Source of the DNA: Bugula neritina
Lineage: Eukaryota; Animalia; Bryozoa
Assembly (NCBI GenBank): GCA_964035545.1
Contig: OZ037767.1
Span: 10,488,581 to 10,552,580 of the forward strand
DNA length: 64,000 bases
Direction: 5' to 3'
This document shows, piece after piece, positions 19,564-63,823 of the stretch (position 1 is the first letter of the stretch; each line of letters begins with the position of its first letter). The notes below the pieces were generated by a model. The model did no database searches, was not told the origin of the DNA, and was given only the letters and a program-made list of their open reading frames with translations. The position numbers and the translations under genes are program-made.

Positions 19564-19652
19564 GTCAACGTTACGGTGCTGAGTGGTTTAAGGCGCTGTG
19601 TTCAGGTCGCATTCTACTCTTGTAGGCGTGGGTTCAAATCCCACCTCTGACA
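19564..19652 (+). pseudogene. tRNA-Leu(CAG)-derived pseudogene
   Basis: GAGTGGTTTAAGGCGCTGTGTTCAGGTCGCATTCT...GGCGTGGGTTCAAATCCCACCTCTGACA matches eukaryotic tRNA-Leu(CAG), including the long variable arm and B box. The 5' acceptor strand/D-arm entry is disrupted (GTCAACGTTACGGTGCT) and the anticodon stem has a mismatch. Confidence 0.8.
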
Positions 19653-20774
19653 AAATTTTAATATCTGGTAATGGTAGATAGGTCAAGTTCATAATGACTT
19701 AAATTTTTTACAGGGTGTCAAATACATAACAATATTTTAGATTGTTTTAAAATAAATAGTTGACCATTTAGCCCGCAATTTTTTGCGATGCCAAAACACA
19801 CTGAACTGAAAATTTTGCTGATGACATCTTCTTGCAAGTCAAGTAGACAGTGCTAAACATGAGTGATTACATGTCCCTAGTTTGATGTCATGGCTTTTTT
19901 ATAATCTTTCAAATTTAAAATTTCTAATTTAATTGTTATTTATAAGCTTATCAACATGTCAAAAATTCTATGATTTATTGATAAATCTATTGAAGCTACT
20001 GAAAAAAGTGTGGTTATAGTGATACAGTTTAACTGCTTAGCTCAACATACTACCATAAACAAAAATACAGGCCATTGAAGATGCAAAAACAAAATGTGTG
20101 TTATACTTTTGCTATTCAACAACATTGGAAAATTTGAGAAACCCAAAAAAGCGTTGGCAAGACTGCCAAACAAAGAATAAAAATATAAAACAAGTTTAAA
20201 GGCTAGCAACAGTGCCAAAAGCTGCTGGTCAAAAACTTATAAATCTCCATACAAAAGTAGCTCAAGTGTTATTTTATATAGTATTAGTGAAGATAAAATT
20301 AAGCCCCCCATAATTCAACACTAAAATTGTGGAAAAAAGAATACTTTTAATGGAACAAAAGAGATATTTTGTTTCATTTGACTAATAACTAATGTCATTG
20401 GAAACCTTTGCCTCTTAATTAACTAAAATTTTATAAGAAACCAATAAAATAGCAGTTCCTCGAAATAAAAAACCCATTGTTTAGCACTGATAATATGCAA
20501 TAAAAATAAGCCTATGTAATATGTATAAGAATTCGAATAAATTACAAACTTTAACCAGCTAATAAACATAAAAAAAAACAATATGACACTGAATATCAGA
20601 TTTAGGACAGCAAAATTCAAAGTAAGATTGAGTGTGTTCACAAAAATAGCTGGGTCTATCAATGCTAAAAGATATGCTACAGCATTTCAAGATGCAAAGA
20701 AAATTTATTAAAAAGGGAAACATAGAGATAGTATCAATTTCTTAAAAATTTTTCTATACATTATACTTTACTTA

Positions 20775-21117
20775 GCCTAGGGCCACACTGTGCGTATTTT
20801 CGCATGCGAAAATTAAAATCACGGGTAGCAAAGGTGTCCACTGTAGCGTCAGTGATGCGTGATAAATAAAGCTTTCATTTTTAAATCGCACTCGCTTTCA
20901 ATAAAACGCAATTTACTGGAATATAGCACTAAATAAAGAAATTGGGCTCGCTGAATAACTACCAGCCAATTAGGTGACGACGACAGAGACGATTCGCACT
21001 TGCGTTGAAAATGCAGAGCGACAAGTGCGAAGGTTTTCTCAACGCGCACAGTGGACACCTTTGCTACTTGTGATTTCAATGTTCGCATGCGAAAATACGC
21101 ACCATGTGGCCCTAGGC
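20775..21117. mobile_element. PIF/Harbinger MITE, 343 bp
   Basis: About 70-bp TIRs starting GCCTAGGGCCACA..GTGCGTATTTTCGCATGCGAA, with a TTA TSD on both sides (20772-20774 and 21118-21120). Confidence 0.9.
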
Positions 21118-21515
21118 TTACTCGACTAGCTGCAGTGCTATTGTGCCATATGGCCTTGTCAATAATGATTCCGCTTTACTCTATGCTTCTTTTGCTGTGT
21201 CTTAATCTAGTAAAGCTAACATGTGATGAAGTTTAAAATAGAGTTTGATTTACATGTGTTATTTTAGAACTGTCGAAATAAGATTTTTAATTAATTAATA
21301 ATTAGCTTAATTTTTAGCAATCACCTTTATGATTGTATGACCTCTTACAAATGTAGATAAGCTTGCCTTTACATAATTACTTATGACATTTTCGACATAA
21401 TTAATTGTTTTCAAATTCATTTGTCTTATCATTTCTAAATGTTCTATTTATATATTTTACTGTGTTAAAAATCATATGAAACTAGAAAATTTGATTACTG
21501 CTATGTTGTAGTGTT

Positions 21516-23371
21516 ATGAAAGATAGCTCTATTCATGTGGTGCCATGCACCCCTCAGTTAAGTTGTCTTCATTCGACACCTTTGTCTGCAGTGTCTTCCT
21601 ACAGGTTCTACAACTCTGTATCTCCAAGGACACCATCTTCTATCTTTAGAAGAGATGGTAGAACGACAGAAACCAATCAGAGGCTAGCCTGTACGTGACA
21701 ATAATTTGCAACAGCCTGCCATTATCAATTGAAAATTAAATCGCATGTTTTGCATACCTGTTGAAATGCTGGATAAATGCAAATAAAGTTAGTTTTAAAT
21801 TTGGTCTATTATTGTGGATCCTTCACGGCTTGTGCTTATTTAACATAAAAAATTCATGCATTATACTACAGTTTGCCATTATCAATTGAAAATTGAATCA
21901 TGTGTATTGCATATTCCTGTAAATGCTGGATAAATGCAAATAAAATTTATTTTAAATTTGGTCTATTATCATAGATCATTCCCAAACCTATGCTTTCATT
22001 CAGAAGTTTCTTGAATGGGAGTGGACAGTTAATAGAATTTTGTTTGAGTATACCGTCCTGAACTTATAATTTTCTTGTTGGTTAATGGTAGTATGTGTAT
22101 AAAGTAACTGTACTTATGTGTGTACTTCCGAAGGCTTCTGTATATGTATATATATTAATTATGTGTGCTTTTAAACCTCATATGCTTTCAAAATCATGCA
22201 TGTAAAATAACATGGTTCTAGTCGGTCATGTGCATGCATTGTTTGCAAATAAGATTTTTCCACATTTCCTGTATGCTTGTCCACAGCTTCCGGTGATACT
22301 CCATCTACTTCAAGTCTCACCCCCATAATGAGGGTCAACAGACGACAGCTAGTTTCTTTTCCAATTGGTACAACACCTGTCCAACTTCGGCCATCATTTA
22401 CACCAATTTGGAGGCTAGAAAAAGGGCGATCCAAGGCAAATATAAGTGGTAAGCATTTATTTAAGAAAAGAAATCATCTGTATTAAAAGACTAAGAACAA
22501 CTGTTTTTGTAAGAAAACCTGCAGCGTTTGGGGTTGTGGGATTTGTCTTTCCAATCAATGCTCGTACTTGTTTATATCTCAATTTTGAACAAAATGTGAT
22601 AGTAATTGTCATGCGCTGATTTAACATTGTCTTCAACTATGGTGTATACTAAATTTTCTGTCAACTTCTCTTGGTGATATTGTGTCAGGTTTTCTAGAAG
22701 TCAATATCAATCCATGAGTAGTATATATATATACATATACATACACACACGCATGAGCGCACGGATGTGTGTGCGTTCGAGTTTGTGCATGTGTGCGTAT
22801 GCGTTTCTACGTATGCGCGTGTGCATATGTGTGTTCGTGCGTGTGTGTTACATTATGTTTATTTATTATTTATGGATATGTATTATACTATGATACCATA
22901 TTAAAATGTTTTATATTTAAACATTTTACAGCATCTCAGAATCAAGTAGTTCCTGGTACTCCTCAAAATATTACAGAAAATAAATTCAATTCTTCTAAAA
23001 CCAAGATCAAACCTCGTGGATTCAAGCTGAACAGCCATAGCCCTGGGGCACCTTACAACACATTGCCAGTAAGTTTTTATTTGATTTAAATTATTTTTAA
23101 TACTATTTTATATTAGGTTGTACTGTATGTTACCCATTGTTATACTGTGTGTTTCACACCACTATACCATGTATTATTATACTGTATATTATACACTGCT
23201 GTATCGTATGCTTTATGCTAGTATACTGTATATCATGCTATACATATACTTATTATATTTTTGCAGAACAGTCACTCCAGGCCATACTTCACTGCAGATG
23301 ATGACATCTTTCTGGATGAAACAGAGGAGGGTGTCCATGGCGATGAGTCAGAGCATATATTTGACTTGTAG
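21516..23371 (+). CDS. Uncharacterised S/T-P-rich protein with acidic C-terminus, about 192 aa; exons 21516-21690, 22287-22448, 22932-23068, 23267-23371 (upstream exons possible)
   Basis: Four exons with good acceptors/donors and consistent phases (1, 1, 0). The C-terminus is FTADDDIFLDETEEGVHGDESEHIFDL*. A further intron follows in the 3' UTR (23385-24069), with AATAAA at 24224-24229. Confidence 0.7.
21710..21981 (+). repeat. Two imperfect direct copies of a ~115-bp segment (period about 157 bp) in an intron
   Basis: TGCCATTATCAATTGAAAATT...AAATGCTGGATAAATGCAAATAAA...TTTTAAATTTGGTCTATTAT occurs twice. Confidence 0.85.
22722..22848. repeat. Compound TA/CA/GT microsatellite
   Basis: Visible dinucleotide runs. 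Confidence 0.8.
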
Positions 23372-23387
23372 ACTCTGACAGACAGTA

Positions 23388-23550
23388 AGTATGTATACAC
23401 ACATCTGCATGTATACACACATCTGCATGTATACACACATCTGCATGTATACACACGTCTGCATGTATGCACACGTCTGCATGTATGCACACGTCTGCAT
23501 GTATGCACACATCTGCATGTATGCACACGTCTGCATGTATGCATGCATGT
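23388..23550. repeat. Minisatellite, 18-bp unit GTAT(A/G)CACAC(A/G)TCTGCAT (about 8-9 copies)
   Basis: Tandem array beginning at the GTAAGT donor at 23385. Confidence 0.95.
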
Positions 23551-25072
23551 GGTTTGTATAATATATGCACACTTTTTGCTCTGAAGTGTCATAGCGATGT
23601 AAGAATGGTGCTAGTGAATTGTTATGACTAAATTCAATCTTGTATATTATTGCATATATTGCATTATGTATTCTCATAATATATTTATATTATTATAATA
23701 TTTCAAATTCGCATACTAAATAGTTCTAATATATTAGTATTGTTTTTTTATAAATTCACATATTCCCTTTATTTATTATATATCAACATGAAGTAGCTGT
23801 CAAAATAATTAGTTAATTATTATTAGCAAGCTGATAGGCTGCTGTAGGCTTTCACAGCACTAGTTTCCATTTTGTCATGGATATAAGGAGTTGTCCTTCT
23901 AGCTTTTCATGTGCTAAGACTTGTTGCAAGCAGTTGCCAATAACCTAAGATAGGGCCAACAGTTTTGTGTTGAAATCTATTTCCGATTATATATTTTTTT
24001 AGTTTTTATTACACACTATTTATCATCTTGTTTCATTGAATAGTATGTATAATTGGTAGCGATTTTTAGGAGACCATGGATACTGATGCTGTTATAAAGA
24101 ATGAGCTGACTAAGAATGTTTGAAGAATACTTTTGTTGCTGAAAAGTTAGCATTACACTATCCTGTAATACAAACTGTGCCCATTCTGTTTATTATGCTG
24201 TATCTAGTTTTCTACACAACTTGAATAAATTTACATCTTATCTACTGCAATTCATAGTTTTATTACTATTAGATTACAATTTTATTCATTTTATTTGGTT
24301 GCTAGAGATTTACAAATATGAAAAAAAAACTGAACTCCTATCATAAATATATCATCAGACAGATTAAAAGATGGATGTCTTCTCACCAACTATTAGGATG
24401 TCTCCATGACAACTTAAAATAATATTGTATAAAAATATTACAAGCTAAAAATAATATAATCTCAAAATTAAAAATGAACATTTATTAAGAAGCAACGAGC
24501 ATTATTGTAGCGGGCAATGCCTAATGCAATAACAAAACCGATTAACTCAAAGTGCTGCACATGGCATTTAGCAATTAGCGTAATAATAACTTTACAACAT
24601 ATATAATGATATATACATTTTATTACATCAATTCAATTTAAACTATATACAGTCGAGCTACAATGCAAGCGGCCATTTCACTAAGTTCAATATGGTTTTT
24701 AGTATTTATAATAGCATTATGGCCCCATGCAATATTTTATTTTGTTATAGGTTCAAATTACAAAAATAAATTATATAGTGCTAAAATATAAGTTTAGTTA
24801 AATGCTAACAACATTTTAAAAAAATTGTGTGCTTATACACAACTTGCTCAATCATAGAACCACATAATTTCTACAAATCTGTTTTACAGACTTGAATTTC
24901 TAAACTTTGAAAGCCATAAACTTGCAAGAAAATGCCTATTCATAAAATTTAACATGTGTTTAGGCTAAAGGGGAACATATGGCTAGAAATGGCAGTGAAA
25001 TACTTTGTGATACATTTGTTTGTAATAAATAAACAATGAAACTGTGTATTACGCATTACTTCAGGCAAAAAT

Positions 25073-28000
25073 CTAGCTTTTATATGGATTGAAACGCACA
25101 GAGTTCGTTCGAGGAATATTGCTGTGCGTTGAAAGTGCTTTATGCATACCATTGACAGCACACTGATTATTTGATAGCCTATCGAAATACAGCTTGAGAA
25201 AATCTTTGGACATTTGTTCTGGAGTTGGCATCATGCTTTGATGCTGTTGCATAGGCAGCAGTGGTGGGTACTTGCAGACAAATCCAGCTAAAATATTATC
25301 AAGAAATATTATTAAGAATACGCAGAAGCAATTTGAATGCAACTTAAATGTTGAGTGACCTAATTACTTTCTGATCTGACTTGTATGAATGTCTGTAAAG
25401 TTAGCTAAAGAAGATTTACAATTGTTAGTTATGTATGCGGATAAAACACCATACTTATTGAAAAAGTTATATAAAGTACTATGAGCTACTTACATGGCAT
25501 TAATGGAAGCGGATTCTGTGGCAATTGTGTCAAGAGAGCATGACTCATAGGGTTGGGCACGGCTGGATAACCTTGTCTAGAAGCTTTTATTAGCAAGTCG
25601 ACACTTTCTCTGTCAATCTGGGTGATTCTGGCAGAGTCTCTAAAACCTTTTGCAAAAGGATTGCTGTCTATCTTTAGCTTTGTGATCTAAAATAAAAACA
25701 TATTATCATAATTACTCACTTTGATAAAAAAGAAATTTGATAGAACTCATTCAACGTTGCCATTAGTTAGCAATTGCAACAGCTCTAATGCAGTTGTGTT
25801 TTGTGGTACTTGCCAGCTGATTTTGATAAGCTGTCACTCCTATGAATTGTGTCTCTTCAAAAGTAAACACTTTCCTGTCGTGAGTTTCAAGATCTGAGAG
25901 GAAACTAGCTTTTGGAACTTTGTCTTCGTATTTCACAAGATGCACTCTTGGAAGGTATTTATGCATCGAATTTAAAACTATCTGTAAAGAAATAAATGAA
26001 GTTACACAATTAAAGCAACACGCAGCAAAAAGTTTGCAAACTTGTCTAACTGTATAATAGTAATATTATAATAACAACAATTTATTTTATGGCAATATTA
26101 TTATAATAATAATACCGAAATACCATCATAGCAGCATTAACATTATGGTATTAATAATACATTATTATGGTATCAATAATATTATAGTGTGAATATTATA
26201 ATATTAAAATCATAACATTAAAAATATGAAATTATTATAATATTGATATTAATAATATCAATGTTAAAAATTCAGTACTGTTAAAGCCTTTTACTAGTTT
26301 ATGGTGCTACTATAAAATGTATAAAACTCGTATAAAATATATCACAGTGTAACATTATATTTGGACTACTACATTTTTAATATTTCGAGTTATTTTTATT
26401 GCTCTAGCATTTATAGGTTGCATTAATAAACCTATTGAGCAAAACATTTTAGATAATGTATTAATATAATAGTTATAACTTACATATCCCCACTTATCAT
26501 GTAAATTGTTGGTCAATTTCACTTTCTCAAAAGATATTGACTGTTTCATCAGTGAATCTCCTCTGAATGGACCATCTGGATGTGTGTAGACTCTACAGTA
26601 ACACCACTAATACTATAACTACTGTACATACCCTACAGTATCACTAATACTAAAAATACTGTATATACTCTACAGTATCACTAATACTAAAAATACTGTA
26701 TAAATTATATGCGTAAACATGTATGTATACACTTACAGTATTACTACTATAACATATGCTAATTAATAGAAAAACAAAATAATATATTACAACAATGCTA
26801 AAGTGTATTAAAAATGAAAAACATGCTAGCAGTAGGAGGGGATGTCAACATATAAATCTGTACTTATATAATTCCATTTTGCATCCAGAAATTTTCATGT
26901 ACCTATATTTTCACTTTTCTCATATCAACAACAAAATCATAGCTTAGTGTGCAACTTACTTGCGGGGTATTGGAGGGTCGGCCCGACCTGCTACCAACCA
27001 GCAGCTCCTGTGGTAAGCGTATCTGTACCTCTTGCTGTCAACAGCCACTATGTCAAAGAAAACTTGATAGTTAGCTTTGGGATCCAAATTAGAGAAAGAT
27101 ACTCTCATAGATGGAAACATCCTCCTGCAAATTATTAATATTTTCATCAGCTTGACTAGCAAAATTAGGTTTTCAATCACTTACCATCTTATTGGGTAGA
27201 TAACTCCATATAAACACGAGCAATATAGAAATAAATAATATTATGCTTTTCCTAAAAGGTGACAGAAAATGTATTTCTAATTGCTTTATGTTTCAGAAGA
27301 GCTACAAAGTTATTCATGACAGAATATAGGAAACTTTTGTGATAAAATCTTGTTTGGCTGGATTAGCTTTGATGTTGATTAAAATTATTGTAAAACTGTC
27401 AGAATGACATCCTCAGTTGCATCCTCTACTTTATGTGCACAGGTTAAATGTCAGATACCACTGTGTGATTGTGCTGCTGTGATTCAAAATGTCCAATAAT
27501 AATCAACTTTAAAGAATGTTTTAGAGCATATGTGATATACCTGTGTAGTGTGATTACCTCTATATTTATTTATATATCAAGCGGTAGCTTGGTAGATTCA
27601 TTAAATTAGATTCTCATCAAAGATTAAATATGATTGTACATGCTCATAATTACTGTGTTTGTCACACCAAGTCAATATTACATCACAATACAGGCATACA
27701 GTGTTGCATGGTAACATTACATTACTTTTAACATTGTAACTCATTTCTATATGCATACATTTTAGGAATATTTTAATTCTCTGTAGCAGTTTCTTTCCAC
27801 TTCTCTGTTGGTGCATAGAAATGATTTGTATCTATTACAATAACAGCTTTTCAACACAGCTATAAGCCTCTACTTTCATACCATTTGCCAATTTGTTGTA
27901 TTTTCAGATTGTAAAACATAAACATTGTCTAATTAATCACATTATGTATGACCTGCCTTACCAATACCTAAGTCTGCTAACTAGGTTTATATTGTGCTTA

Positions 28001-45974: not shown

Positions 45975-46331
45975 TGCTTTGTGTTAACTTCAGCTAGATA
46001 AGCCTGATTAAACTAGTGCGAATTTCTTGATGATGATTTCTTGATTTTACTTTGTGTCTATTAAACACTGTTTGATTAACTAAAATAGTTTCAACTTTGC
46101 TTGCAGTGCACTTTGACTCAATTTACAAAATTGAAGGTTGCAGAGTATAATAAATAGCATAGAAAAAGTACAGGGTAGAGTATGTATTTTTGCGTTGAAT
46201 TGGTTTCGAGTGCACAATTTCTGTACAGATGTTCTGTATTTTGATTTGTTACGTTTTTGTGTCTGGCTTAGATTACAGTTTAGAAGATGTCAAACTTTAT
46301 TTAAAACATCTCCTAAGACTAAAGCTTAGTA
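45975..46331 (+). pseudogene. Inverted partial duplicate of an intron plus exon start of the Sec14-domain gene
   Basis: TTAGATTACAGTTTAGAAGATGTCAAACTTTATTTAAAACATCTCCTAAGACTAA (DYSLEDVKLYLKHLLRLK) and the preceding intron-like sequence match the reverse complement of about 51082-51465. Confidence 0.8.
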
Positions 46332-46594
46332 CAAAGGCATACAGCTAGTGTATGGAAGACCACAGCACTAAAGATGGCTATTTGATGCATAAGACTTCAT
46401 GAATAATGTGAACCACCTTTTGGCTATTTATAGCATTATGTTTTTATAGGCAGTTTTTTGTTGGATGAAAAAATAATATAATTTAATTGCATATAATATG
46501 ACATATTGATGTTTTTCTAATTACAATGAGGAATATATAAGTTATATGAATTAACATATTGCAGATCCAATTGGCTTCTAACTTGATTCTCCTA

Positions 46595-47583: not shown

Positions 47584-48567
47584 AATCTTGGACAGCTTTT
47601 TCAACACATTTTTACCTTCAATTGATTTGCCTACTTGACCCCAATCATAACTTTTATTAAACTTTTTAGCGAGTTTAAATCAGTGAAGAAAAAATATGAA
47701 AGACTCAGAGTGGCTTCCATGTTTAGCATTTTCAGCAGGAAATGACATCATCAAATTTCTTGCAAGTCCTGCATGTTGTATTATATTGTTTTTATTATAC
47801 ACGTTATCACTACATGTCAAAAGAATTATAACCAACTTCTTATTAGCAGACATAAAGTTTGCGGTTTCTAAAAATAAAACACCATATATCAAATAAAAGT
47901 GTTGGAAGTTACTTTATCAAAAAACTTGGATACTTTTTTATATAACATACTTTCAATAAGACTAGGTATATATATTATTTACTTGGGATAACTAAATAAA
48001 GCAATATTTGGATTTACAATGATTTGCTTCATGTACTTAATATATTGCGCTCTTGCTGTAACTGATCCAGTTCTAATACATATTTTTAAAAGTTAAACCA
48101 AAAAGAAAGACGCCCTGGAGTTGAAACTATTGATGACATTGCCATCGTCATCTTCTTCTATTTTATACACATGGTTCAGTCTTTCCTCCATAGTACTAGC
48201 TATCCCAGCTTTAAACTTCACTGTGCGTTTATGTCTAGCACCATTACTGGTGAAAGCCATGCTATCTACAAGTAAATCAACTTGTATTAACATACAGTCT
48301 CTTGCTTTATGCTTGCGTTTTAGCAGATAAAATGGGAATACAATTTAAATATATCTTTACCGGCTAGCAATTCAATTGTGAATAAGTATACAAGAAACAT
48401 TTTGTTTTTATTACTTTATTAAACAAAGTAAACTACTATTAATACAATTTAACATTCAACTTGGCCGATCTATCCTAGCCAGAATAATTTCAAGATATAT
48501 CTAACTTTGTACTCATAGCATTTGAATTTTTAACTGTTACAATATGATATCAAAAGATCAGCTCACA

Positions 48568-51500
48568 CTAGTATATGTAAACACTATTTAGCATACACTG
48601 CAGACTAGCATATGTTGCATCATCATTCCAGAAAAGTAGGACTGTTGAAATATATTATATTTTGTTGACAGTTTATCTCTGATAGTAAACTAAGTACTCA
48701 CAAGTTCCAGGCTTAGAAGCATCAACAAAGTTGAAGTAATAGTGATCAATTTCACTGATAAAAATCAACACTGTTTTGTTTATGATATCTTTTGTGTTGG
48801 GAGGTAAGTAATAGAGTTCAAAATCTATTAATCCATCAGGCATAAATTCACAGCTGGAATAAAAAAGTCAACATGCATAAATTCAATTTAAAAGAAAAAT
48901 TATCAACTTATATGTTTATAGACCTATATTGCATTAAAAATACATCATCATAACTTTTGTACTACAACTGTAGTATTAAGTTATTGGATTATCACTGCAT
49001 TATTGTATTTTATTATTGTATTTCATTATTGTATGGTATAACTAGAGCGGCACTCACTAGAACTTGGCGCCAACTGTTTGAACATTTTGTTGGTAACTTT
49101 GAATGTCGGAATTAAGATCATCAAGCTTTATGGTAGTCGACAGTGCAGCATTTTCCTTCTTTTCCAAATCCTTAAAAAGCACAAAAACAGCTCAGGTTTT
49201 GGAAAACAAGTTTGGATGAGATATAGCTTTGAAAAAATTGGCTAAAAAATTTATAAATTGTAATTCAATGTTTGTTACTCGTACTTCCTGATAAAAAAAA
49301 TTGAAGTTGCAATTTGTTTAACACTACAAGACTTTTGTGGGTTTCTATGAGAACATCTGATAGAAAAGATCTTTTAAGCAAGCAAAGGACCTGTTTTTAT
49401 TGTAGCAAATTATCAACGATGACTGAATTCCCTTTCTAACACCGCTTTTACCAGGAGAAAACCATTGATTTCATGTTTACTAAGCCAGTGCTATAACCAC
49501 TAGACCACTGTTGCTCTTTTTTGCAAGCAATTACAAAAATAGTCAATTTTACTACAGTGTCTATACTCTATAGTAACATACTTGTGCTATATGAAAAATA
49601 GTAATGTTCAAAACACATGTATGCAGGTCAGAAATATTTATTTCCCAATAGTCTATAAACAGCGACTCACCTTTAGATAAAAATGAGGTGGCACTGGTAC
49701 CAACATGTTCATACCAGAGTAGATATTGTATGTTCCGTAGAGAGAAGGGGGAAGATATTGTTTGTCTATCACACTATGCAGTATATCTTGCCAGTCATCT
49801 CTATCTAAGTGCTGAGTGTGAAATCCTTTACGGTTCTCAAAGAGAGGCAGATAATATCGATCCAGCATCTTTTTACATCTACCACCTAACAGCACAGCAA
49901 TAAATATATACTGTATACATGGCCACAGCACACTCAGCTGTGTCTATAGCAACAATATCTATATTAATAATGTGTCTATAGCAACAAAACCTATATTAAT
50001 AATGTGTCCATAGCAACAATATCAAAAACAACACTGTGTCCATAGCAACAGTATCTATAACAATACTGTGGCTATGACAACAATATATTCTAGTAATTTA
50101 CCCATTTTAACAGTGTATACAAATTTATCTATAGTCAGAGCATACACAAACATAATTTATATGTAGCAACACATATATATGCACAGGTGCAAACATTACA
50201 TTATATTGAACCATATCAACAGTGCAAATATGTGCTCTTTGGACTTAATAAAACTTTCTTTGCTTACAAGCTAAACTTTCACTGTACATTCCTAGTTTTA
50301 TATCATAAAATATAAGATTTGATGACAACCTGAATGCTTCAATATACTTTATATCACAATGTAGCTGGTGTACTTTTAGCATGTACACTATAAAACACCA
50401 GACAAACTTGATATACACACCATGTATAATGTAGACATTCTTGAACAGGCAGGGATAATTCCTACATAACAGCAGGAGAGAGGCATGAAACCAGCCCAGA
50501 CCTTGCACAGCTTTAGATTCGAGGTGGTTTAAAAACTGGCTACAGTCTATAACAAGGATGGAGCTGTACCCTCCCTATATTTAAACAGAACAATACACAA
50601 ATACAGTTAACACCTGTTCAAAGCTAAAAGCTCAACATTTAAGCAAAAATAAAAGACTTTTTTTAACTCTAAACATAATAAAGCCTTATAAGTTCAATAT
50701 TAAAAAAGTAAACTTTTAATATCTCTTTACCTCCTTAGACAAGTGCTCTACCATTTCAAAAAGATACACCATATGCAGCATAAACTGGGAACCAGTACAG
50801 CTCTTTGCTAAGCCATTGAAATCTATTTTATCAAACTGACAAACAAATGTGGGGTTATCAGCCCGATCAGCACCTGTACACTCGATGATGTTTCCATGCT
50901 GCAACATAATAACACTCAATATACACTCAATATAATATTTCCATGCCACAAGATAATTTAATATAAATGCGCTGAATAAAACTTAGGTGAAGATCATGCA
51001 AGGTAGATCTTGTAAGCAGGCACATACCTTCAAGAGAACTTCTTGAGGAGCATACCTCTGGTACAACGTCCATGCCTCTATACTAGACCTTAGTCTTAGG
51101 GAATGTTTTAAATAAAGTTTGGCATCTTCCAAACTGTAATCTAAACCAATTAACACAAAATGTAGCAAATCAAAATGCAAAACATTAATACACAAAGAAC
51201 AAACCAAAATTATTTCCAATTCAAGTGAAACATACATGTTCAACTGATTAACTCTGCACTAATGTCTACATATTTTACTCTAAAGTCTAATACAACCTTT
51301 TGAATTTGTAAGTGATCAAAATACACTGCTGCAAAACTAAAACCAGTTGTAATCGAATATTGTTTGATAGGAACCAATTACAATAAAATCAGCCACAAAT
51401 TATTATTTACACATGCTCAAAAGCTCAATCAGTTATTTTCAGCTGAGGGTAAAACAAAGCAATGAATATATTTTTTACGAAATCTATTTTAATTTGTACT

Positions 51501-54500
51501 AAGCGTAGGGCCACACAATGCGTTTTGCTCGAGCATGACGTGAGAGAAAACCCATTAAGCCCAAAAATTGGACGTTGTGTGCAGATTTTCAAACGTCTAA
51601 CATGCTGAGCGAAAAGTGCGTCATGCTCGTGCGTTTTTGATCTAATTGGCTTATTACCATAAAATATTTAGCAAGCACACTTTTTTATTTTGATTTATGA
51701 TTTAACTTCTAGAGAGCTGAATTAAAACAAATTGATATAGTTTGCATTTCCACTTTTATAATATCCAAGTCACTTTGCTGATGACGTAGTTTTAAAACAG
51801 TTAAAAACAAACGTCTGTAGGCGAGCAGTAAAGTTTAACGCTAACATCATTAGCTAAAAAATTTCTGCACTCGCAATACACGCATTGTGTGTGGCATGTC
51901 CAAACGGGTTTTCTCGCACGTCATGGCCCTACGCTAATGACTCAACAAGCAGGCAAGAGAACTTAACTCTATATAGGTCTTGTATTCGAGTTATGAACCT
52001 TGTCACACTAACCATATCCTATTTCTGTATTATCAAAACTCACCCTTAATCCATCTAGAAATGTAAGCTGATGTCCATCCAGCCCTGATCATCAAGCTAC
52101 ATTCATTCAACAAGGAACTAGCTAATGCCTGTTCAGTAGGGTTGATTACTTTTCCATTTACTATTGTATCTGGATCAATCTCTGTAATAGGATCTTTTTC
52201 ACTGCTTTCCTGTCTCCTACCCTACAATTAAATGCATCTAAGGATACTCACTCTACTTGAATGTAATGTTGATTGCAGAGATCTTGTGAGCTTCTAGACT
52301 GAAATGAAGCAAGCTGCCAGCTTGATCTCTACGTCATTATGCTCGATTCCTGTGACTCACTGTATTGTCTGTAGACTAAAGAACATGAAAATAGAAGCGC
52401 AAACCTTGAACTCCGTCAAAGCTTTTTCTAAGTCTCCACCATTGTCTTTGAAATTTACTGTTGATTCGTTAACTATTAATAGAACCTAAAAATACCACCA
52501 ACATATAATAACATCTGTGCATTCTTGAAAATAAAACATGAGGTAGGACACTGTATGTAATGTTGAGTTTACTCAGTGGTCCCTCTGGTATAATGGCTAG
52601 TGCGCCTGCTTGTAAGCCCAAGGTCTCAGGTTTGAATCCCAGCTGGGCAAAAGTTTTTTGCCTAAAACACTGTTTATTACTCATCATAACCGCAACTAAT
52701 GCCCTATGCTAAAACTTCAATAGCTCTATTGCTGTAGATCAATAGTTATTAAATCAGATCAAATGCAGGTTAACATAAGACACACAAGTCATTCACAACT
52801 CACTAAACAACTCAAGGATGACCAAATTCATCAAATCAACAAAATAAACTACAGGTTGATTCGGTAAGACTCAACCAACATAACTCATCTATGACTCAAT
52901 ACATGCTACACCTATGATTCATGCCATGGAACTCATGAAATGACCCATGCTATGATGAACTCATGTTATGACTCATGCAACACGACTCATCTATGACCCA
53001 TGACTGACTCACCCATTTTAGAATGACTGCGAGAGTCATTTGCTCATTACTACTCTCCTCATCTATGTTAATAAGACTAAGATATGGGTCACACAGATAT
53101 CTAGCTTCTATTATATTCAACATGTTTGATATGGCTGGTGAGTAATTTTTAGCTTGTGCTAGAAGGTTTGTCACTCGGTTATAGCCAGACACCTCATTTC
53201 GAATATCCCACCATCGCTAGAAGAACAAACATATTTTTAAAGTATGAACAAAAAGAATGTTCTAGTTAATATGGCTCATCTAATCCAACAAAGATAAATG
53301 AAGCGGTGACACGAAATTTCGAAAATGACAATTGGAAAACGCCTATTTGGAAAATGGACAATTAGAAAATGGACAATTGGAAAATAAATATTTGAAAAAT
53401 GACATTTGAAAAATGAAAAATATTTAACATGGTCTGGTCCTGAGGGGTTGTCCGGCATCTGGTCAATTCCAAAATAGTTTTTAAAAATAAATACAATGGC
53501 TAAATCAGTTAGGTTATCATGGAAGTAGAATTAGTTACCGAGTAGTTCTAATTTAAAATTTTTCACATTTACAAAAAGCTTTTTGATCGTGACCAGATAC
53601 TAAACGCCTCCTCTGAACTAGGCCATAATGAATATTCTTCATTTTCCAAATGATATTTCCAAATGTCTATTTTCCAATAGGTGTTTGTCAATTGTCATTT
53701 CCAAAATGTCGCGGATTCGAATGAAGCACCAAATAAAAAACAACTATAACAATATTTGGTAAATGATAAAACAGTGATCAAAAGTTCCATAATGTATTTT
53801 GATAGCTAATTAAGTTACAACTAAAGGTCTTTTGTTATTTTGTTTCATTGGAAAACTTGAGCTCACTATTTTCTAACCAACGTCAAATATTGTATGTTAG
53901 GAAGACCAATACAACAATGAAATATGTTCATCAATCAATATAATGTAAGTTATATTTCCTATGTACATATTCTTATACCAAGCACATTAGGCGAATGAAA
54001 AGTTTTTAAATGAGAGAATCTATATGGTGACATGCTTAGCAAACCTGTAGGGTGAGATGATCTTTTTGCAGTACAAGGAGAAACGCTTTCAGTATATCAA
54101 ACACCTTGAGAGGCACTATTGTGTATTTGTAGAAACCCACAATGTCTACTGGATTGATTTCAACTAACTAGAAACAAAAACAGCCAAGTATTATACTGTT
54201 ATTTAACCTAACCAGTTTGAAGTTCCAAGTTGAAGTCATTAACAACTTATGTGAAATGATGATAATATATTTACGCCGAGTTTGATCTTCTCAATACTGG
54301 CGAGGAAAGCATTTAATTCAGCTGCACTGTCCATCAGTTTTTTCAGCTTGTCATGAAGTAGAGATAAAGGAGCGGCAAATGCAGGCGCCATTGATCTCTT
54401 CAGTGTCTTTAAACTGTGCATAGCAACTTCTAAATTTCTTATATGCATCGCAACTTTTGGGTGTTTCTCCATTATTGTCATTTCTATTTCTGCAAACCAG

Positions 54501-57500
54501 AAAGAATTTAGTAACTGTTAACATTATGTTGGTAAATTAAATTATAGCATGAGACTAAATAGTTAATAGTCATTGTCTAACAGAAATACAATGGTAAATG
54601 AAAGCTCAGCACAAACCAGGTGCAGGTTCTTGCAAGTCTGATATAATTGAAAACATAGACTACAGGTAAAAATTTATAGTAAGCATTAATTTCTGGAAGC
54701 TTGAATTCAGACACATTGACTCATTAAATATTATGACTGCTTACATTGAGTTAGAACTATGCTGTGACAAAAAATCAATCAGCTGTATTATAACAGCACA
54801 AGCACACTGTTTGTGTTGAGTCTAAGTCTAAAGACCTTTTATTCCTAAAAATGCAAACTAATAATATGCAAGGCTGAGAGAAATGAAAAGAGAGCTTTTT
54901 AACATACAACAAGTCTTTAATAGTTGAATTTAAGGATTTCTAGCTAGTACTAAATGAACTATTTCTAGTTGTAGACAAGTAAAAATAATCAAATTATATA
55001 TAATGAAAACATGTGTTTATGTAAAGGTAAACATATTGGTGCCTAATATGATCTAATTAAAGAAGGCATTGTATAGCATGACATATAAACACAATATGAC
55101 ATATATACAGCAACTCTTACCAGCCTTGATGGTTAGATACTTTCCACAGATGACAGACAAAGCTGAATACTGATCTCGAGCTTTGCTGTCTAAGGCAGAG
55201 TTTGAGACATCTTCTTCCATAAGAGCTATTCTCACATAATCCTCTTTAGATAAATGCTGTTACATCCAATACATAAACAGATTTATAAGATAAATTCACA
55301 TTTCATGTATGAAATATAATAGCACTAGGTTGCAATAGTTTTCACATTACCTACTATAAAGTCGAAAATAGAAATAAAGCACTAGCAAAAAACTGTTCAA
55401 GCAAAAACTTTATGTTACATCTCTGACCAATTACAATACAATACATTTTTATTTTATTAAACAACCACATAATGAGTTTTTCGAATATCCACTTGCACCT
55501 TTCGACGATACTAGTATGTGTGAAATTAACTGAATCGCAGTTCTTTTTTTCAGCAATGATCTAAATACACCATAAAATACAGAGACCAACTTTGAAGAAG
55601 TTAGTAGCATTACACTGACTTTTATAAAACTAATTTGCATAATCTGAGCGACTAGAGACAATGCAGCTTTGTATGCTCCATCTTTATCTGGAAATTCCAG
55701 CTCTTCAAATCTTTTTGTTAATTCAAGCAGATGCATGATGTTCTGGGTCTCTTCCGCTTCAGCAATAGCGTACCGCAACTCCTCACATATGTTCTGGTAG
55801 CCCACAACTGAGTAACAGAAAATCACATGGTGAACTGACACTAAAATAGCCAGTGACTAAAGCACTAAACCAAAAGTCAGACTAAGCCCCTTTAGTACTC
55901 CCTGTAGTACCAAAAATGATTACAAGAGTATTCAATTTGCCGACTTTGATGCAATTTTTCTCGATGAGCTACGTTTGTTTCTTAGGAATTAATCTAATCT
56001 AAATATAGTTGAATACTATTTCGATTTTTTTTCAAAACCAGTACAGCTTTAATGAAAACTACATTTAAAAAAAGAAGGCATTAGGAAAAGTTTAAACCTA
56101 TTAGATGAACTGCTATAAAGAAATTAAAGTACAGTTTCAAACAAATGACAGTGGTACACAAATACTATACTCAGCAGTGACAGTAGTAGAGCTGCAACAG
56201 TTTGAAACCAAAGTGAGTAGAACGTACTATTCTGATGCATGTTTGAGTTCATTTTAGTTATCTGAGAGCTCAGTTCTTTGTTGTACTTATCAATTAATTG
56301 TATAAACTCCAGTTTTTGAGGGTGAGGCAATGGTTTGAAAAAGTCACGCAAACTATAAGTAAAAACAAACAGAATTACCAAATCTACAGACACTAAGGAA
56401 ATGCATACCTACAAGTTGATTATTGACTGAAGTTCTACAAACAGTTTTTGTTGTTATATGTCATATTATATTATATAAATTGCTATACTATTACTAGATG
56501 AAGCAACACAAGTTTTTACGATAAAACCATTTTTTGATGAAAGAATTTTATTAGTATAATGTGTCTCATAACTTTATTCACGAAAATCGAAGTATTTAGC
56601 TAAGAATAAAAAAATGTCTAGATCAAGCATTTTTATGCAGTAAAGATAACTACTTTCTTATAGCAAAATGTAATATAAACAACTCACTCCTTCAAACCAG
56701 ACAAATCTCGCTTGCTCTTTGCCTCTTCGATCTCTCCTCTCGCCAACTCCATGAACTTGTCGTCTGCCTTTGGAAGAAGTTCGTCTGCATCAACAATTGC
56801 GAACTGCTTGACACAATCCTGGGCACTCTTGATTTTGCTCCATAATGGCTGGATAACAAAAGAGCAATATTGTTCAATAGCTTCATGCGGAATTGATTGA
56901 AAGAAGACAATAGTTCCTAAAATATGGAAACTTACCCGACACTCTTTGCCATAATCCAATATCTCCCTTAAGGGACTGAATGTCATGTCATACAACTTTT
57001 TTTCAGCCGTCTTTATCACATCTCCAGGATCATCAATACCAACTCTACTAAACTCTATCCGAGCACCAATAATGGCAGCAGACAGTTGCTGCGGAGCTAC
57101 ATTTGAGTCACCTAATAGTCTGGTAAGAAAAGGTACGAGTTGTTGGTATAGAAGAGCTTTTCCAGTTTCTTCCAACTCTAAAAATATGCCGATGCAATAG
57201 AAAATTAAAAATCAAAAAAATGTAAATAATAGTTAGGTATATGTATTGTCGTTTAAAAAAGCTTAGCATATAGTATGTCATAGAATATGTGTATATAAAA
57301 TAAAGCACTGGCTCCAGTTACTACTATTGGACGTTATGTCACCACTACCAAGGGACATTAACTTAGTCTACTCCACTTAATAATTATGAATATTCAATAA
57401 CTACTTGTAACAGAATCCCTGAACAAACAGACTGACTTACTTCTCAGGTCATTTGTTATTTTGTACTGCTTTTTGCTAAGATTAAAAGCTGTCAGAATGG

Positions 57501-60500
57501 CAGCCAGATCTCGAGGTTGTGCCTTGTTTTTGATGGCTGCTTGCAATTGCTTGGATATTTCATCATACAGCTTCTAAGAATACAAAGCAAAATTATATAT
57601 CTAAACATGTTATGACAAAGAAAATAAATATGAAAGTGATTAGAATGGCTTTCTGATGATAAAAGAAGATGCTTAAATTATAATACACATATCTCAGCAG
57701 ACTATATTAAATACATTACTTAACAATATAACAAGACTAAAAACTGAGTCCTTCATAATGTGAGTTTTTAAATTAAAATTATGAAATACAAGTACATTGC
57801 TCTTTCCGTATCTCACTAAGCTGCCGATCTGGATACCTCAATTTGTGACATAGTAGAATACCAGATTTAATTGTGTCCCTATACACACACATATAAGCCA
57901 CAAAACCAGAAGCCTATATACTATGTGGTAAATATCATCATGAGTATTTTGGAGTTACCTTCTCTGCACGGGGCATCACGCTATCCATGTCTTTCAGTCC
58001 ATGGTTATCTAAACTGCTTCTTAATTGAATTATAATGTTATGAATGTCTTGGGCTGTATGTGCTTTCTCCAGAGAGTTAGCTAGTGGTAGTATCACAATG
58101 TTGTATAGGTTTCTGTTGGCTTTATCAAGGAACCCTGACACATCCTGCATCGTAAGTAAAGTCACGAGTTTTATGATATTAATGATTAGTCAAATTGCAT
58201 ACTGGGGTGCAATGTATTCAGAGACACACTCATATGCTTAATTAGAATAAATCTAATTATCGAAAAGTTTCTTTTGCAAGTTGTTGAACGTAATCTGCTT
58301 GTTAATAACTACATAACAATTTATTTAGTCAAATGAAAGTATTAAAAACACTTTGTTTAACAAATTATCAAATTTAATTGCTTTTTTATTAAAACCCGAT
58401 AGACGTTTCACCCAAACCTATGGACGCTAAAACATTTACCGCTACTCCATAGAAAGCAAACTTGTTGATGGCGTTTCGTATTTTAATAGAATCTTTCCTT
58501 TTCATTTCTTCTGCTAGCCCTTCTTTCAAAATCTTATAAAGCTGAGTCTTTGCTGTCTTAATAAGACCTTCATAGTCTGTGATGTTATGGAACTCCAAGT
58601 CTCTCTCCGCCTCTGTTATGACATCCCGTAGCAGCTGAGCTGTAGGTTGTTTGGTAGCCTTTTTTAACTTAGCTGTCACTTTATCTGGAAAAAATAGCAA
58701 AGCCCATTTAAGAGCTTTTGTGTAAACACTAAATATATTATACGTTTGTTACCTCTTTCACCATGACTGCAAAGCAGTGAATTGTCTAGATTGATTGTGT
58801 AATGTGTTTAATGCTATTGATATGTTTTAGCTCAAAGTAAAGACAGAGGGCATAGTTGCAGTCCAAAACTGTCAACATTTACAAAGACGGCAGTCAACCA
58901 ATCAAATTAGTTGACTCATTTTTTATACATATAAAAAATCCAACTAGATGATAATGCACTGTATGAACTAGAAATTAGTAATGTAGAACGTAAAAGTTAT
59001 TCGGGTTAAATTGTCTTTACTTACCAGTATTCTATATAATAATCATATAACTATTGTATACGTACTGATAACACAATATTAGATAAATTAATGTACTCAC
59101 TATATATTGCAGTCTCAGCTTTCTTTAAAAAATCCATTTTGTCAGGTATTTCATACTTCTTAAACTCTTGGGATGCAAAATGAATTTCCCACAAATCTCC
59201 TCTTCTCAATGACTAAAATTTTTGCACCCAAAACTACAGGAAGGCTGCCTGACACATTGTATAAAATGCAAATCAGCTGATGGCACATCATTGAAATAAA
59301 GATAAACTTGAAATAAATGCTACAATGACAGATATAAAACTTTGACAGTTTCTACATTTCTACAAACTATTTAAAAACTCAACCTAATAGTTCAATGAGA
59401 AACTATGTATAATAAACTAACCCTGAGCAGTTGTTTAGTGAGAAGTTTAGCTAAGTTGTCAGTAGCTTGCTTGATCAAAGGGTTAGCATCAGCCGTGTCT
59501 TCAGGCATAAAATGATTGTAGTTCTCTAGAGCCTCCGCCACATCTTTATAGTTCTAAAGCAGATAAGGTTCTAGAGTGATATCAGTAAAGCACAAAGACA
59601 AGAAATAACCCCAAATTAAACTGATGATGTTTTTTCGTAAAAGAAATACTCGAAAAGTTAACAGGAAATAGTAAGCAGAAAATTTAGTTATTTTACAAGT
59701 AAATGCGGGCAATTTTAAGTAACAGCAAAAAATTAATCTAAATATAATTAAAGCATAAAAAACACTAATTAATATAAAACTTTTAAAACTGTCAATGTGA
59801 GTCATATTTCATGGCAAAACATTTCATACAATGAGTTCCCTTGCCAGAGATATTCACTCACATTACTGTTGATAGCATCTAGCAGCTGGAGAACAGCCAT
59901 TGCCTTCTTGGCCAGTATTTGCTTAGCTTTATCCATCAAATTCGTTTTATCGGGATCAGCAAACATGTCATGCTTTGTCATTTCCTGTTAATTGTGAATG
60001 AAAATAAGCCATTTATTAGTGTACACTACTAACAGTGCTACATATTTTATAGTAACTAGATTTAAATAGTTTCTTTTAATATCATAAAAACTGTTATATT
60101 AAAAAAATATTTAGTACAGCTTACTGCAACCGTGATGCCCATTCCACGAATATCGTGCTCGTTAATTTGTTTTTCCAATTTTTTCTTTAAAATATCCTTC
60201 AAAGCCTCCTGAACGAGTGATTAAGAAGTTAACTATAAATAGCTACTGAGTAAAGAAACATTTTCACAGACACAAATCTTAAGAGCTATTGAATAGTGGT
60301 CAATATGCAATCGTTTGATAAACCACAAGTGAATTACAGCAAGTTGAATTATTATTATATTATAAGTTATAAATTATATTATTGTAATATGTAGGGGTAA
60401 CGGGTAACTCTCAGAATAATGAAATTTTCATGACGAAAAATTCTGCCCATTGTGCCCCGGTACCGGGGTACAATAGGCCACTGGGTGGAACACAACAAAT

Positions 60501-63500
60501 ATATTGACAATTTGTTGATTTGGTTGCCTCCGATCTTAATTTCATTAATATACACAAATAAATAAAAATACTCTTTCAGATCTACAGCAAAAATCATGTT
60601 TTAGCTGTATATTTTGTACCACCGCAGATAACAAGGGGAGGCAAAATCAAATGCACATCACTCGTTTCCACAGTACCATTTCCATTATTGTTGGAACTAA
60701 AAATTTTTTTCTATTTCTAATTCACAGGAACTTTCATCAGAAAAACTTTAGTAACATGTACTACAAAATTCTGAGTGGACTTTTTTCTATAAACTGTAGC
60801 CAAGGTGCATGGCTTCGGTTTGTGACTGGAATGTGGAAGGGGAGGGGGGAAGAAATGTGCAAATCAGAATTTATTTCAGTCAAATACATGTATAATCCCT
60901 CAATGATATAATGTATAATGAATATCATGACTATATGCAGATGATTCCTTGTTGTACAAACCAATCACAACACCTGCTGATTCTAGTTTATTTCAGAATG
61001 ACTTAGACCATCTTATAACTTGGGCAGACAGTTCTCAGATGAAGTTCAATATAAATAAATGTGAGCATATGACAATTCAACGCTCCACTGTAAATCCTCT
61101 AGTGTCTCAATACAGCATGAATAATGACCCCTTACAATGTGTTGACAAAGTATTATACCTTGGTGTCACGATTGATAATAAACCGTCATTCGATCAACAT
61201 ATAATAAACATTTGCTCAAAAGCTAATAAATTATTACACATGCTGATGCGCTGTCTAAAAAAGGCTAAAAGTAAAACCAGAGCCATAACTTATAAAACAG
61301 TCTGTTGCCCTATACTAGAATTTGCGACCCACACCTGGTCTCCTTTTAAATTGAAAAACATCAACATCATAGAAGGTATAAATAGAAAAGCCTTCAGGTG
61401 GACATTCTGTAAGAGAAAACGAGATCATATAACTGAGCTCATGACAAATTCTAATTGGAATAGCCTTGCACAAAGACGTGACAATGCAGACCAAAAAATG
61501 TACTTTTGTATGCTTTCTGGTAGTGCTGCTATAGACCAAGACCGGTTCTCCCTTCATTTTGCAGAGTCTCACAATACCAGACATGGTGCTATTAAGGGCA
61601 ATATCAATACCAAAACTGTCAAACATTCATATAAACATCGCATCCATAAACTTTTCTAATGATTCTAGCTGCTTTGCCTAACTGATTATAAGCACTTAAC
61701 ACCGACTCTGCTTTATATCATCTGAAGCTGTGCGGTGTATATTTATTTATTTATTTACTTTTTTTTTCCCTTCTGGCAGTAGCTAGCTATTGAGCTTTGA
61801 ATCAAAGCATAATTAACTATATTCTTATCTCGTAGACAAAATGGTTTTCTTCCTTACTACTGATAATCTAAACAATTGTTCATACACCACTGCATCTCGA
61901 TAAAGGAGCCAAAGCGCTCCGAGTGAGATTAATTAGATGAGAGATGAGAGATGAGAGATGAGAGATGACTATCCATTAGTAGCAACAGCAGAGTTTTTTG
62001 TATATTTTATAAAACGGCAATTAGCTATAACCTCACCAAATGTATATAGGCCTATTAGCGGAGCTTCACCTTGTAGTTTGGTAGTCTTACCATGATGTTT
62101 TTAATACTTTACAAAAAGGTCAGAAATGGCTATATCTATAGATTGTATCAACATTTCATCTAACTTTTTGGGCAAACAAGCTAATAACAGTGATCAGTGT
62201 GCAAGGATCAAGTGGTACATTGTGCCCCGCGTGGCTAAGTTGAAAATAAATGTGGTTCAAGAAAAGTTTATTTTAGAGTTTGTTGTTATACTAGTTAAGC
62301 AATGTAAAGACAAGCAATAGCAACAATATCAGTAAAATCTAGGCTTGTTACCTTTGAGTGTAAAAAGTTATAAAGCTTTAACAACATCATAAAAAATTCA
62401 CAAAAAGTAGGTAAAAACAGTTTTTGACTTGCCTCTTCAACATGTATGCTCCGTAAGTGTTGAAACTACAATAGCTGAAAAATTATGTCAATACCTTTTT
62501 ATTAAAAAAAATCACAACTCTAAGTCAATAAGTTCTCTCACAATTTGACTGCCTTTTTGTACCGCTATGACCTTTGTGCCCCCGTTACCCCTATTATACT
62601 ATACTCTTTTTCCACTTCGCTCAAACTGATATTCTAGTTAGAATAATTAAACCAGTACATCTAAACCCATTTGACGACACAACAACATTATTTAAGCAGA
62701 ACTAGAAACTCTATAAACTCAAAGCACCTTATAAATAATATAGCATGGTGCAGATAAAATATGCAGACATAAATTGCAGTGAAGGTGCTTTGAATTAAAT
62801 AAAATTAAAACCGCACCAGTATACATGCTATCAGTGACCGCGTAAAAATATCTAATCAAACCTTATCAGTAAAAGATATCTTAGTCTCTGGAACTTCCGA
62901 ATTTGGTTTAGTAAACTGAGTTTTAGTCAACGCCTGTGAAATCATAGCGTGATTTTCTGTATAAATGGCATCTAAGAGGGTTTTCTTAAGGGAGGCTTGA
63001 GATGCTGTGTAAAACATAGACATACAAACATATATCCGCAAGTAAAACTAATATTCTATCAGAAAGGTGGCTATACTTACCCATGTCTGCAAGTCGACCA
63101 ACAGAAAGAATCTTTTGTATTGTTGGACTTTCTTTACGATGCAGCAAAGCTAACCAGTAATATCTGGTCTTCCAAAAGTAGAACAAGATAATGTACATGG
63201 TCATCACTAGCATTGTGCCCTACAAAAACATTAGACTGGTGCAGTGAGATGACTCGCCATACGCACATAATGAATTGGGTCTAGTAAAATAAGTCCAGTT
63301 ACTCACCAACAACACAGCATAGTCTTGGCGACCAATCTTGTATCCAAAAACTCTTACAACGAACTGAAACTCAAACCTACAGTTGGTGGTAGGATCAACC
63401 TCTCTATCAAAATACAAGCCACAAACTTTAGTATATTAGTAACATCTAACTATTTCGTTGGTATACAATTATGATCAACATTGATTCAATAAAAAGTGCG

Positions 63501-63823
63501 ATAAACTAGAGTTACAATAATTCCTCTTGTCAAGTATGCTGTTAGCTTTGTATGATCCATAGTTCTAGAAAATTACAGCTTACTTGGCAATTAGCCAATT
63601 ATTGAGTAACTATGTAGCAACTTACAAATTGGAAAACTCCAACAGGAAGAAGTATTCTGGAATGCCGTCTTCTGAAGGAGGTGGATAATAACAGTCACTT
63701 TTCTTGTCACAATGCCAGTTTATGGCATTATTGCTAAAATCATAGACTGGGTAGCCATCATAAGTTTCACGAGGAAAATATTCTTTAGGGGCGATCATTA
63801 GAGAATCTGGTTGCTTTCCATCA
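48568..63823 (-). CDS. Large multidomain protein, 5'-partial, at least about 1400 aa: TM helix, helical repeats, dynein-MTBD-like segment, CRAL-TRIO/Sec14, GOLD. Exons approx. 63626-63823, 63307-63376, 63081-63219, 62862-63004, 59862-59984, 59422-59553, 59101-59212, 58440-58684, 57959-58144, 57441-57573, 56688-57177, 56228-56352, 55620-55807, 55121-55256, 54275-54489, 54045-54167, 53013-53216, 52405-52485, 52044-52221, 51028-51140, 50731-50898, 50421-50574, 49671-49885, 49058-49170, 48702-48853, 48568-48641
   Basis: A chain of GT-AG exons with compatible phases runs to TAG at 48568, with AATAAA at about 48415-48420. Sec14 motifs: YISRWIK-DYSLEDAKLYLKHSLRLR, TGADRADNP, LVIDCS, NYPCLFKNVYIIH, DWQDILHSVIDKQYLPPSLYGT, VPPHFYLK. 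GOLD-like tail FYCEFMPDGLIDFELY...KPGTFLLFWND. A few junctions (63626/63376, 55620/55256, 52405/52221) have alternative solutions. Confidence 0.72.
49440..49516 (-). mobile_element. Degenerate tRNA-derived SINE head
   Basis: The minus strand reads GAGCAACAGTGGTCTAGTGGTTATAGCACTGGCTTAGTAAAC (A box and anticodon-arm-like sequence). The B box is decayed. Confidence 0.4.
49939..50088. repeat. Imperfect ~32-bp tandem repeat TGTGTC(C/T)ATAGCAACAA...
   Basis: About 5 copies visible near the acceptor at 49885. Confidence 0.8.
51503..51934. mobile_element. PIF/Harbinger MITE, 432 bp
   Basis: Termini GCGTAGGGCCA ... TGGCCCTACGC with subterminal inverted match CATGACGTG.GAGAAAACCC. TAA TSD on both sides (51500-51502 and 51935-51937). 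Confidence 0.85.
52578..52650 (+). pseudogene. tRNA-Thr(TGT)-like pseudogene or tRNA-derived SINE head
   Basis: A box TGGTATAATGG, anticodon-loop-like CTTGTAA and B box GGTTTGAATCC. The stems pair poorly. Confidence 0.55.
52865..53012. repeat. Low-complexity ATGACTC/ATGACCC repeat adjoining the donor at 53012
   Basis: Repeated GAGTCAT-like words on the sense (minus) strand directly after GTGAGTCA. Confidence 0.65.
53305..53718. mobile_element. Mutator/foldback-like non-autonomous element
   Basis: About 150-170-bp degenerate TIRs built from GGAAAATG(G)ACAATT tandem units. Flanking direct repeat (A/G)AATGAAGC at 53296-53304 and 53719-53727, consistent with an 8-9-bp TSD. Confidence 0.75.
60394..62591. 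mobile_element. Tc1/mariner(pogo)-like non-autonomous DNA element hosting a nested LINE
   Basis: TA|GGGGTAACGGG ... CCCGTTACCCC|TA, i.e. TIRs with a TA TSD. The motif TTGTGCCCC recurs at about 60450, 62220 and 62575. Confidence 0.65.
60935..61964 (+). mobile_element. 5'-truncated CR1/L2-clade non-LTR retrotransposon (RT C-terminal half; open frame to 61659)
   Basis: LYADDSLLY...FQNDLDHLITWADSSQMKFNINKC...YLGVTID...YKTVCCPILEFATHTWSP. It has a 3' microsatellite tail (GAGATGA)n at about 61935-61968 and a flanking direct repeat ATGACTAT at 60927-60934 and 61965-61972. Confidence 0.9.

Follow-up and report, generated by a model that had tools for sequence, protein, structure and literature searches.

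A bryozoan CatSper-gamma gene with an apparently long cytoplasmic extension and its possible role in anchoring or regulating the sperm-tail channel

What protein is encoded by a locus that appears to join a membrane helix, a long helical rod, a dynein-like segment and a lipid-binding module, and does it represent one gene or two? This question arises from a 64,000-nucleotide stretch of the Bugula neritina genome (G000:C3:10488581-10552580), which we refer to as the window and to which all positions refer unless a contig is named. A sequence-only reading had placed these parts in one gene on the minus strand, between 63823 and 48568, and proposed that its product is a membrane-anchored lipid-transfer tether. 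We asked what the gene encodes, where it begins and ends, and what its different parts may do.

The earlier exon chain, about 26 exons said to read continuously, was largely sound in its course and incorrect at both ends. In a coordinate test, 28 minus-strand exons from 63823 to 48568, the earlier last exon included, had GT-AG ends, matching phases and one 1,410-codon open frame. Continuity holds for the 27 exons between 63823 and 48702, which have GT-AG ends and compatible phases throughout and contain no stop, but these form only the 3′ part of the gene. The exon starting at 63823 (x21), regarded earlier as the N-terminus, is an internal phase-2 exon, with 20 exons and a signal peptide further upstream. 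These exons (x1-x20), carrying the signal peptide and the remaining ectodomain, lie beyond the window end at G000:C3:10552779-10563057 and were found by aligning the upstream DNA of four copies of the gene and reading the sequence. The first of them, with a signal-peptide-like stretch, is located 11 kb past the window end, and two ectodomain junctions outside the window, x5/x6 and x8/x9, are uncertain by at most about 20 aa. At the other end, the proposed last exon (48568..48641) has no match in the three paralogs and contains a stop in the tandem paralog; it is not conserved and is probably intronic. The likely last exon is instead x48 (48093..48265): its phase fits, the four copies share 87-96% identity over it, and the same hydrophobic residues close it in each. 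This C-terminus, identical in the four copies, bears what we take to be a resemblance to a putative PDZ-binding end. The whole gene comprises 48 exons and encodes about 2,445 aa (2,446 aa with the corrected last exon). The joined 48-exon model was used for the frame, hydropathy, dN/dS and self-comparison, while database and folding queries were run on single exons, which lowers the sensitivity of every domain call.

The N-terminal half of the protein is that of a CatSper-gamma. Exon x20 matches the Pfam family CATSPERG_C (PF22846) with 40.3 bits against a cut-off of 27.6 (E 4e-10), and x21 (63626..63823), a Cys-containing exon of this C-terminal or stem domain, continues the same profile at positions 94-133 (E 0.029). 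The orthologue in a distant relative, on ENA contig L016, also matches PF22846 (E 3e-8). The CATSPERG Ig-like family (PF22851) is matched collinearly by x16 (E 3e-4, profile 2-28) and x18 (E 0.08, profile 80-113), each below the cut-off singly. The only PDB match of x20 is mouse CatSper-gamma (7EEB_F and 9UBW_F, E 6e-7). The beta-propeller (PF15064) and N-terminal domain gave no match in the genome search, which was uninformative, or with single exons; the length of the ectodomain fits. This ectodomain, about 1,100 aa long, Cys-containing and preceded by a signal peptide identified by eye, is conserved in the four copies. Its layout of a putative Ig-like domain, then a stem domain, then one membrane helix is that of CatSper-gamma, which has been described with a single TM (PMC8004680).

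Consistent with the earlier prediction of a single TM helix followed by basic residues, hydropathy revealed one strong hydrophobic helix across the 63307/63219 junction (Kyte-Doolittle 19-mer 2.17). Its start lies with the ectodomain end in x22 (63307..63403, 77% identical in L016), and its remainder is followed by a basic cytoplasmic juxtamembrane segment in x23 (63081..63219, 52% identical in L016). Across the genome, CATSPERG_C has four matches, all copies of the window gene. Genes for auxiliary partner subunits are also present: CatSper beta (G000:C7:929799-931362), two delta/epsilon-type loci (G000:C3:1662521-1663204 and C2:25467697-25468849) and TMEM249 (G000:C1:10746861-10748484). We conclude that the gene, as judged by these profile and PDB matches, encodes a CatSper-gamma subunit with ectodomain and TM helix, and this identity replaces that of a free-standing lipid-transfer tether. 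Beyond the helix, the Bugula protein differs from its mouse counterpart. Its cytoplasmic part appears to be about 1,330 aa long, whereas the mouse chain (1,145 aa), judged by the offset of the x20 PDB match, would continue for about 60 aa past the equivalent TM position; in addition, Bugula has four paralogs.

The cytoplasmic extension begins with x24 (62862..63004) and continues into a rod of about 690 aa encoded by 13 exons (x25-x37, 54275..60208). These lie at 60208-60125, 59984-59862, 59553-59422, 59212-59101 and 58684-58440 (x25-x29), at 58144-57959, 57573-57441, 57177-56936, 56848-56688 and 56352-56228 (x30-x34), and at 55807-55620, 55256-55121 and 54489-54275 (x35-x37). Of the long helical repeat region proposed earlier, the helical character was borne out for x32, the one rod exon so tested, which was modelled as three helices with a pLDDT of 88; the repeats were not, as BLAST self-comparison detected no internal sequence repeats. 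The x32 model had no specific structural match, and the ESM Atlas returned nothing. Apart from the four copies, searches of the genome gave no paralog of the rod or of the MTBD-like part. A helical rod of about 700 residues could bridge the membrane-to-doublet gap in a simple flagellum. The 2,653-nt intron between x24 and x25 holds a LINE-type reverse transcriptase fragment on the plus strand (60931-61659; RVT_1, E 4e-4), which looks to have been inserted in the window copy, because the corresponding introns of the paralogs are only 339-712 nt long.

The rod is followed by the segment that had been likened to the dynein microtubule-binding domain (MTBD). We compared the 48 exons with a 700-column dynein profile built from the same assembly, and x38 (54045..54167) was the best of them (E 7e-4), matching columns 283-317, which correspond to MTBD helices H1-H2. 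Its L016 orthologue matched the profile with an iE of 2e-4 among 216 peptides. The likeness did not extend further: x39 (53013..53216), a putative equivalent of H3-H6, and x40 (52405..52485), the end of the MTBD-like segment, had no match to this profile, single-exon Pfam and PDB searches for an MTBD were negative, and PF12777 had no hit at the locus. The single-exon model of x39 was unusable (pLDDT 48). By eye, x39 has a Trp at both ends, at H3-like and H6-like positions as in dynein, and the stalk prolines are not evident. The net charge of x38-x40 is -4 in both the window copy and L016, compared with +7 and +8 for two dynein cores, and the Bugula protein has no motor. The dynein likeness of the predicted segment is thus real but partial, being limited to H1-H2. 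Since the likeness is so limited and the segment is acidic, direct microtubule binding by this predicted segment is doubtful. Dynein and Sec14 genes also occur elsewhere in the assembly, on contigs C125, C193, C188, C86, C255 and C154 of G000, where they are intronless and contain in-frame TAA/TAG. Four of these genes, when translated, are open with the ciliate code, and the assembly appears to hold ciliate contigs.

SEC14L2/3/4-type proteins have the domain order CRAL-TRIO-N, CRAL-TRIO, GOLD. The last eight exons of the Bugula gene would follow this order, with a linker and CRAL-TRIO-N-like helices in x41 (52044..52221), a divergent Sec14/CRAL-TRIO domain in x42-x45 (51140-51028, 50898-50731, 50574-50421 and 49885-49671), and a GOLD-like segment in x46-x47 (49170-49058 and 48853-48702) that ends in x48. 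The CRAL_TRIO, GOLD and microtubule profile matches expected earlier did not materialize at Pfam cut-offs in single-exon searches; the best of these was CRAL_TRIO_2 (PF13716, E 0.037). We also built exon-profile templates from SEC14-like genes of the same genome. Of the six Sec14 templates, four gave x41, x43, x44 and x45 as their top-ranking exon among the 48, following the order expected; only x44 (E 4.6e-4) and x41 (E 0.005) were clear singly, the others being weak. Five introns, matched by eye, lie at equivalent positions and in the same phase as those of the SEC14L2-type genes L047 and L049, two of them in the GOLD part. A predicted divergent Sec14/CRAL-TRIO domain is therefore supported by collinear exon matches and common intron positions. 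The GOLD domain at x46-x48 is likely from its position and intron phases, but the profile test was negative: the three own-genome GOLD templates did not pick these exons, and no Pfam or PDB match was obtained with single exons. Compared with SEC14L2/3/4-type proteins, the Bugula module is far more divergent (below Pfam cut-offs per exon), lacks its own start codon and forms the end of a membrane protein. The chances that the predicted Sec14 pocket still binds a ligand appear evenly balanced. A stray inverted copy of part of x42 (67% identity over 24 aa) is present on the plus strand at 46274-46345, about 2 kb past the gene end.

Are the two halves parts of one gene? Every exon recurs, in the same order, in the three paralogs, one of which is a tandem copy some 25 kb distant and the other two a convergent pair at C3:2.24-2.28 Mb; with projected boundaries these copies give open frames of 2,443-2,447 aa. 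The dN/dS values relative to the window copy are 0.16-0.20 for the ectodomain, 0.15-0.21 for the rod, 0.07-0.23 for the MTBD-like part, 0.09-0.10 for the Sec14 part and 0.15-0.21 for the GOLD-like part. The whole tail falls within 0.07-0.23, values which indicate that it is under purifying selection in all four genomic CATSPERG copies. A search with a rod open reading frame also returned relatives from other samples at 44-62% identity. Every protein match was a gene call of a single exon, made on a metagenome or read assembly, and no full-length relative was returned. One relative lies on two ENA contigs, L016 and L023, where x18-x41 follow one another in order; splice phases agree at every exon checked, identity is about 30-75% per exon, and the order CatSper-gamma, TM, rod, MTBD-like segment, first Sec14 exon is preserved. 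The expectation of the same domain order in a related genome was thereby confirmed as far as that exon; the contigs stop after x41, and the remaining Sec14 and GOLD parts are known from the Bugula copies only. In L016, x27 and x28 form one exon (L016:6433-6678), and x29 and x32 each contain an additional intron.

The critical junction is the x40/x41 intron (52222..52404). The earlier reading had noted that less than 200 bp separates the MTBD-like exon (52405) from the first Sec14 exon (52221) and that in-frame routes cross this gap, and both observations were upheld. The intron is 183 nt long (170-254 nt in the paralogs), and the phase-0 x40 donor and its matching acceptor before x41 are conserved in the four copies and in L016. 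In L016 the x40 donor is followed after 218 nt by a phase-0/phase-1 exon whose alignment with x41 shows 27% identity and which ends in the same CRAL-TRIO-N-like motif. Micro-exons and alternative donors considered within the 183-nt intron are either not conserved or leave introns of about 30 nt. Sequencing run X1 is DNA-like, with even depth through introns and no GT-AG joints; a contig of its reads spans the x40-x41 junction, and therefore the assembly is sound there. Two intronic high-copy repeats in this region, at 51546-51939 and 53319-53712, have a read depth of 10,000-26,000, compared with about 130.

The locus might alternatively hold two tightly linked genes, one for CatSper-gamma with rod and MTBD-like segment and one for Sec14-GOLD, or transcripts of its main isoform might run past the x40 donor and be polyadenylated within the x40-x41 intron. 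A frame read through that donor would hit a stop within about 20 codons; an AATAAA lies in this intron in two paralogs (the window copy lacks it), and in L016 the intron contains a single ATG with a weak donor downstream of it. Against this stand the shared donor and acceptor, with conservation dropping right past the donor, a gap that stays short in every copy, and x41 itself, which has no Met ahead of its CRAL-TRIO-N helices; moreover, none of the four copies has an ATG-plus-donor candidate for a start exon in the intron. Both forms of this alternative are distinctly improbable, and a single gene with a single transcript across the two halves is very probably what the locus encodes. The proposal of one gene with TM helix, rod, MTBD-like segment and Sec14(-GOLD) module is thus supported by four paralogs and a distant species.

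How, then, might such a protein work? We consider it fairly probable that this one gene encodes a CatSper-gamma whose additional 1,330 or so cytoplasmic residues serve as a built-in channel scaffold. In the sperm CatSper channel, the ectodomain would become part of the beta/delta/epsilon canopy, and the helical rod would extend inward from the flagellar membrane. The MTBD-like module would dock on the axoneme or an axoneme-associated partner, fixing the channel rows. The terminal Sec14(-GOLD) module, which may have been captured from a SEC14L2-type gene, would bind a lipid or other hydrophobic ligand; it could sense or supply lipid near the channel and couple the lipid state of the membrane to where the channel is placed or how it is gated. 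Taken separately, these elements differ in strength. That the protein works within CatSper in sperm is likely, and the balance tips slightly towards the tail being a scaffold or anchor. The most specific version, in which a dynein-derived MTBD in gamma ties CatSper directly to axonemal doublets and a lipid ligand positions or gates the channel through Sec14-GOLD, is unlikely.

Other roles for a single protein have to be weighed against this scaffold. It could work as a lipid-transfer tether anchored in the membrane, either at the base of the cilium or at a contact site, possibly in spermiogenesis and apart from gating, and the TM anchor, long rod and terminal Sec14 module would suit such a layout, as would the strongest constraint falling on the Sec14 exons (dN/dS about 0.09). 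However, the Sec14 domain is so divergent that its transfer activity is no more than putative, and the intact ectodomain and the partner subunit genes favour a channel complex. Because the protein is CatSper-gamma with a 1,100-aa ectodomain, contact-site lipid transfer is less likely than a flagellar channel-associated scaffold, and we regard the tether as rather improbable. The four constrained paralogs would accord with a protein repurposed for cells other than sperm, such as a scaffold or receptor in the motile cilia of larva or lophophore, in which case the fourfold duplication would reflect new roles. This is improbable given that the genome has kept other CatSper auxiliary genes and that CatSper has been described as sperm-specific in the animals studied (PMC6660944).

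A built-in scaffold would have a functional parallel in mammals. In mammalian sperm, CatSper rows keep set positions close to certain doublets, and adjacent channels are linked by intracellular partners (PMC9205950). EFCAB9-CatSper-zeta, C2CD6 and TRIM69 provide a cytoplasmic mass under the channel that organizes the rows (PMC9205950). In mammals these are separate proteins, unrelated in sequence to the Bugula tail as far as seen, whereas the Bugula mass would reside in the gamma chain itself. A gamma subunit with its own rod, MTBD-like and Sec14 modules would be a natural fusion suggesting that anchoring to the cytoskeleton and sensing of lipids are functions coupled to the channel; the tail modules are testable one by one. 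To our knowledge, how CatSper rows are held at the doublets is not settled. In the literature searched, in which subscription papers were mostly outside coverage, queries on CatSper and bryozoa, CATSPERG and CRAL-TRIO, and Bugula and CatSper gave nothing relevant, and we found a CatSper-gamma with a rod, MTBD-like and Sec14 tail described nowhere. CatSper has been reported in brachiopods and as absent from molluscs (PMC6660944). The present locus adds a lophotrochozoan group, one on which we found no relevant papers, to those with CatSper subunit genes, and reveals an unusual fourfold duplication of gamma. Two of the paralogs (G000:C3:2238000-2283000) are arranged tail to tail with about 1.6 kb between them and have many substitutions in common in their 3′ exons, which suggests a recent inverted duplication or gene conversion.
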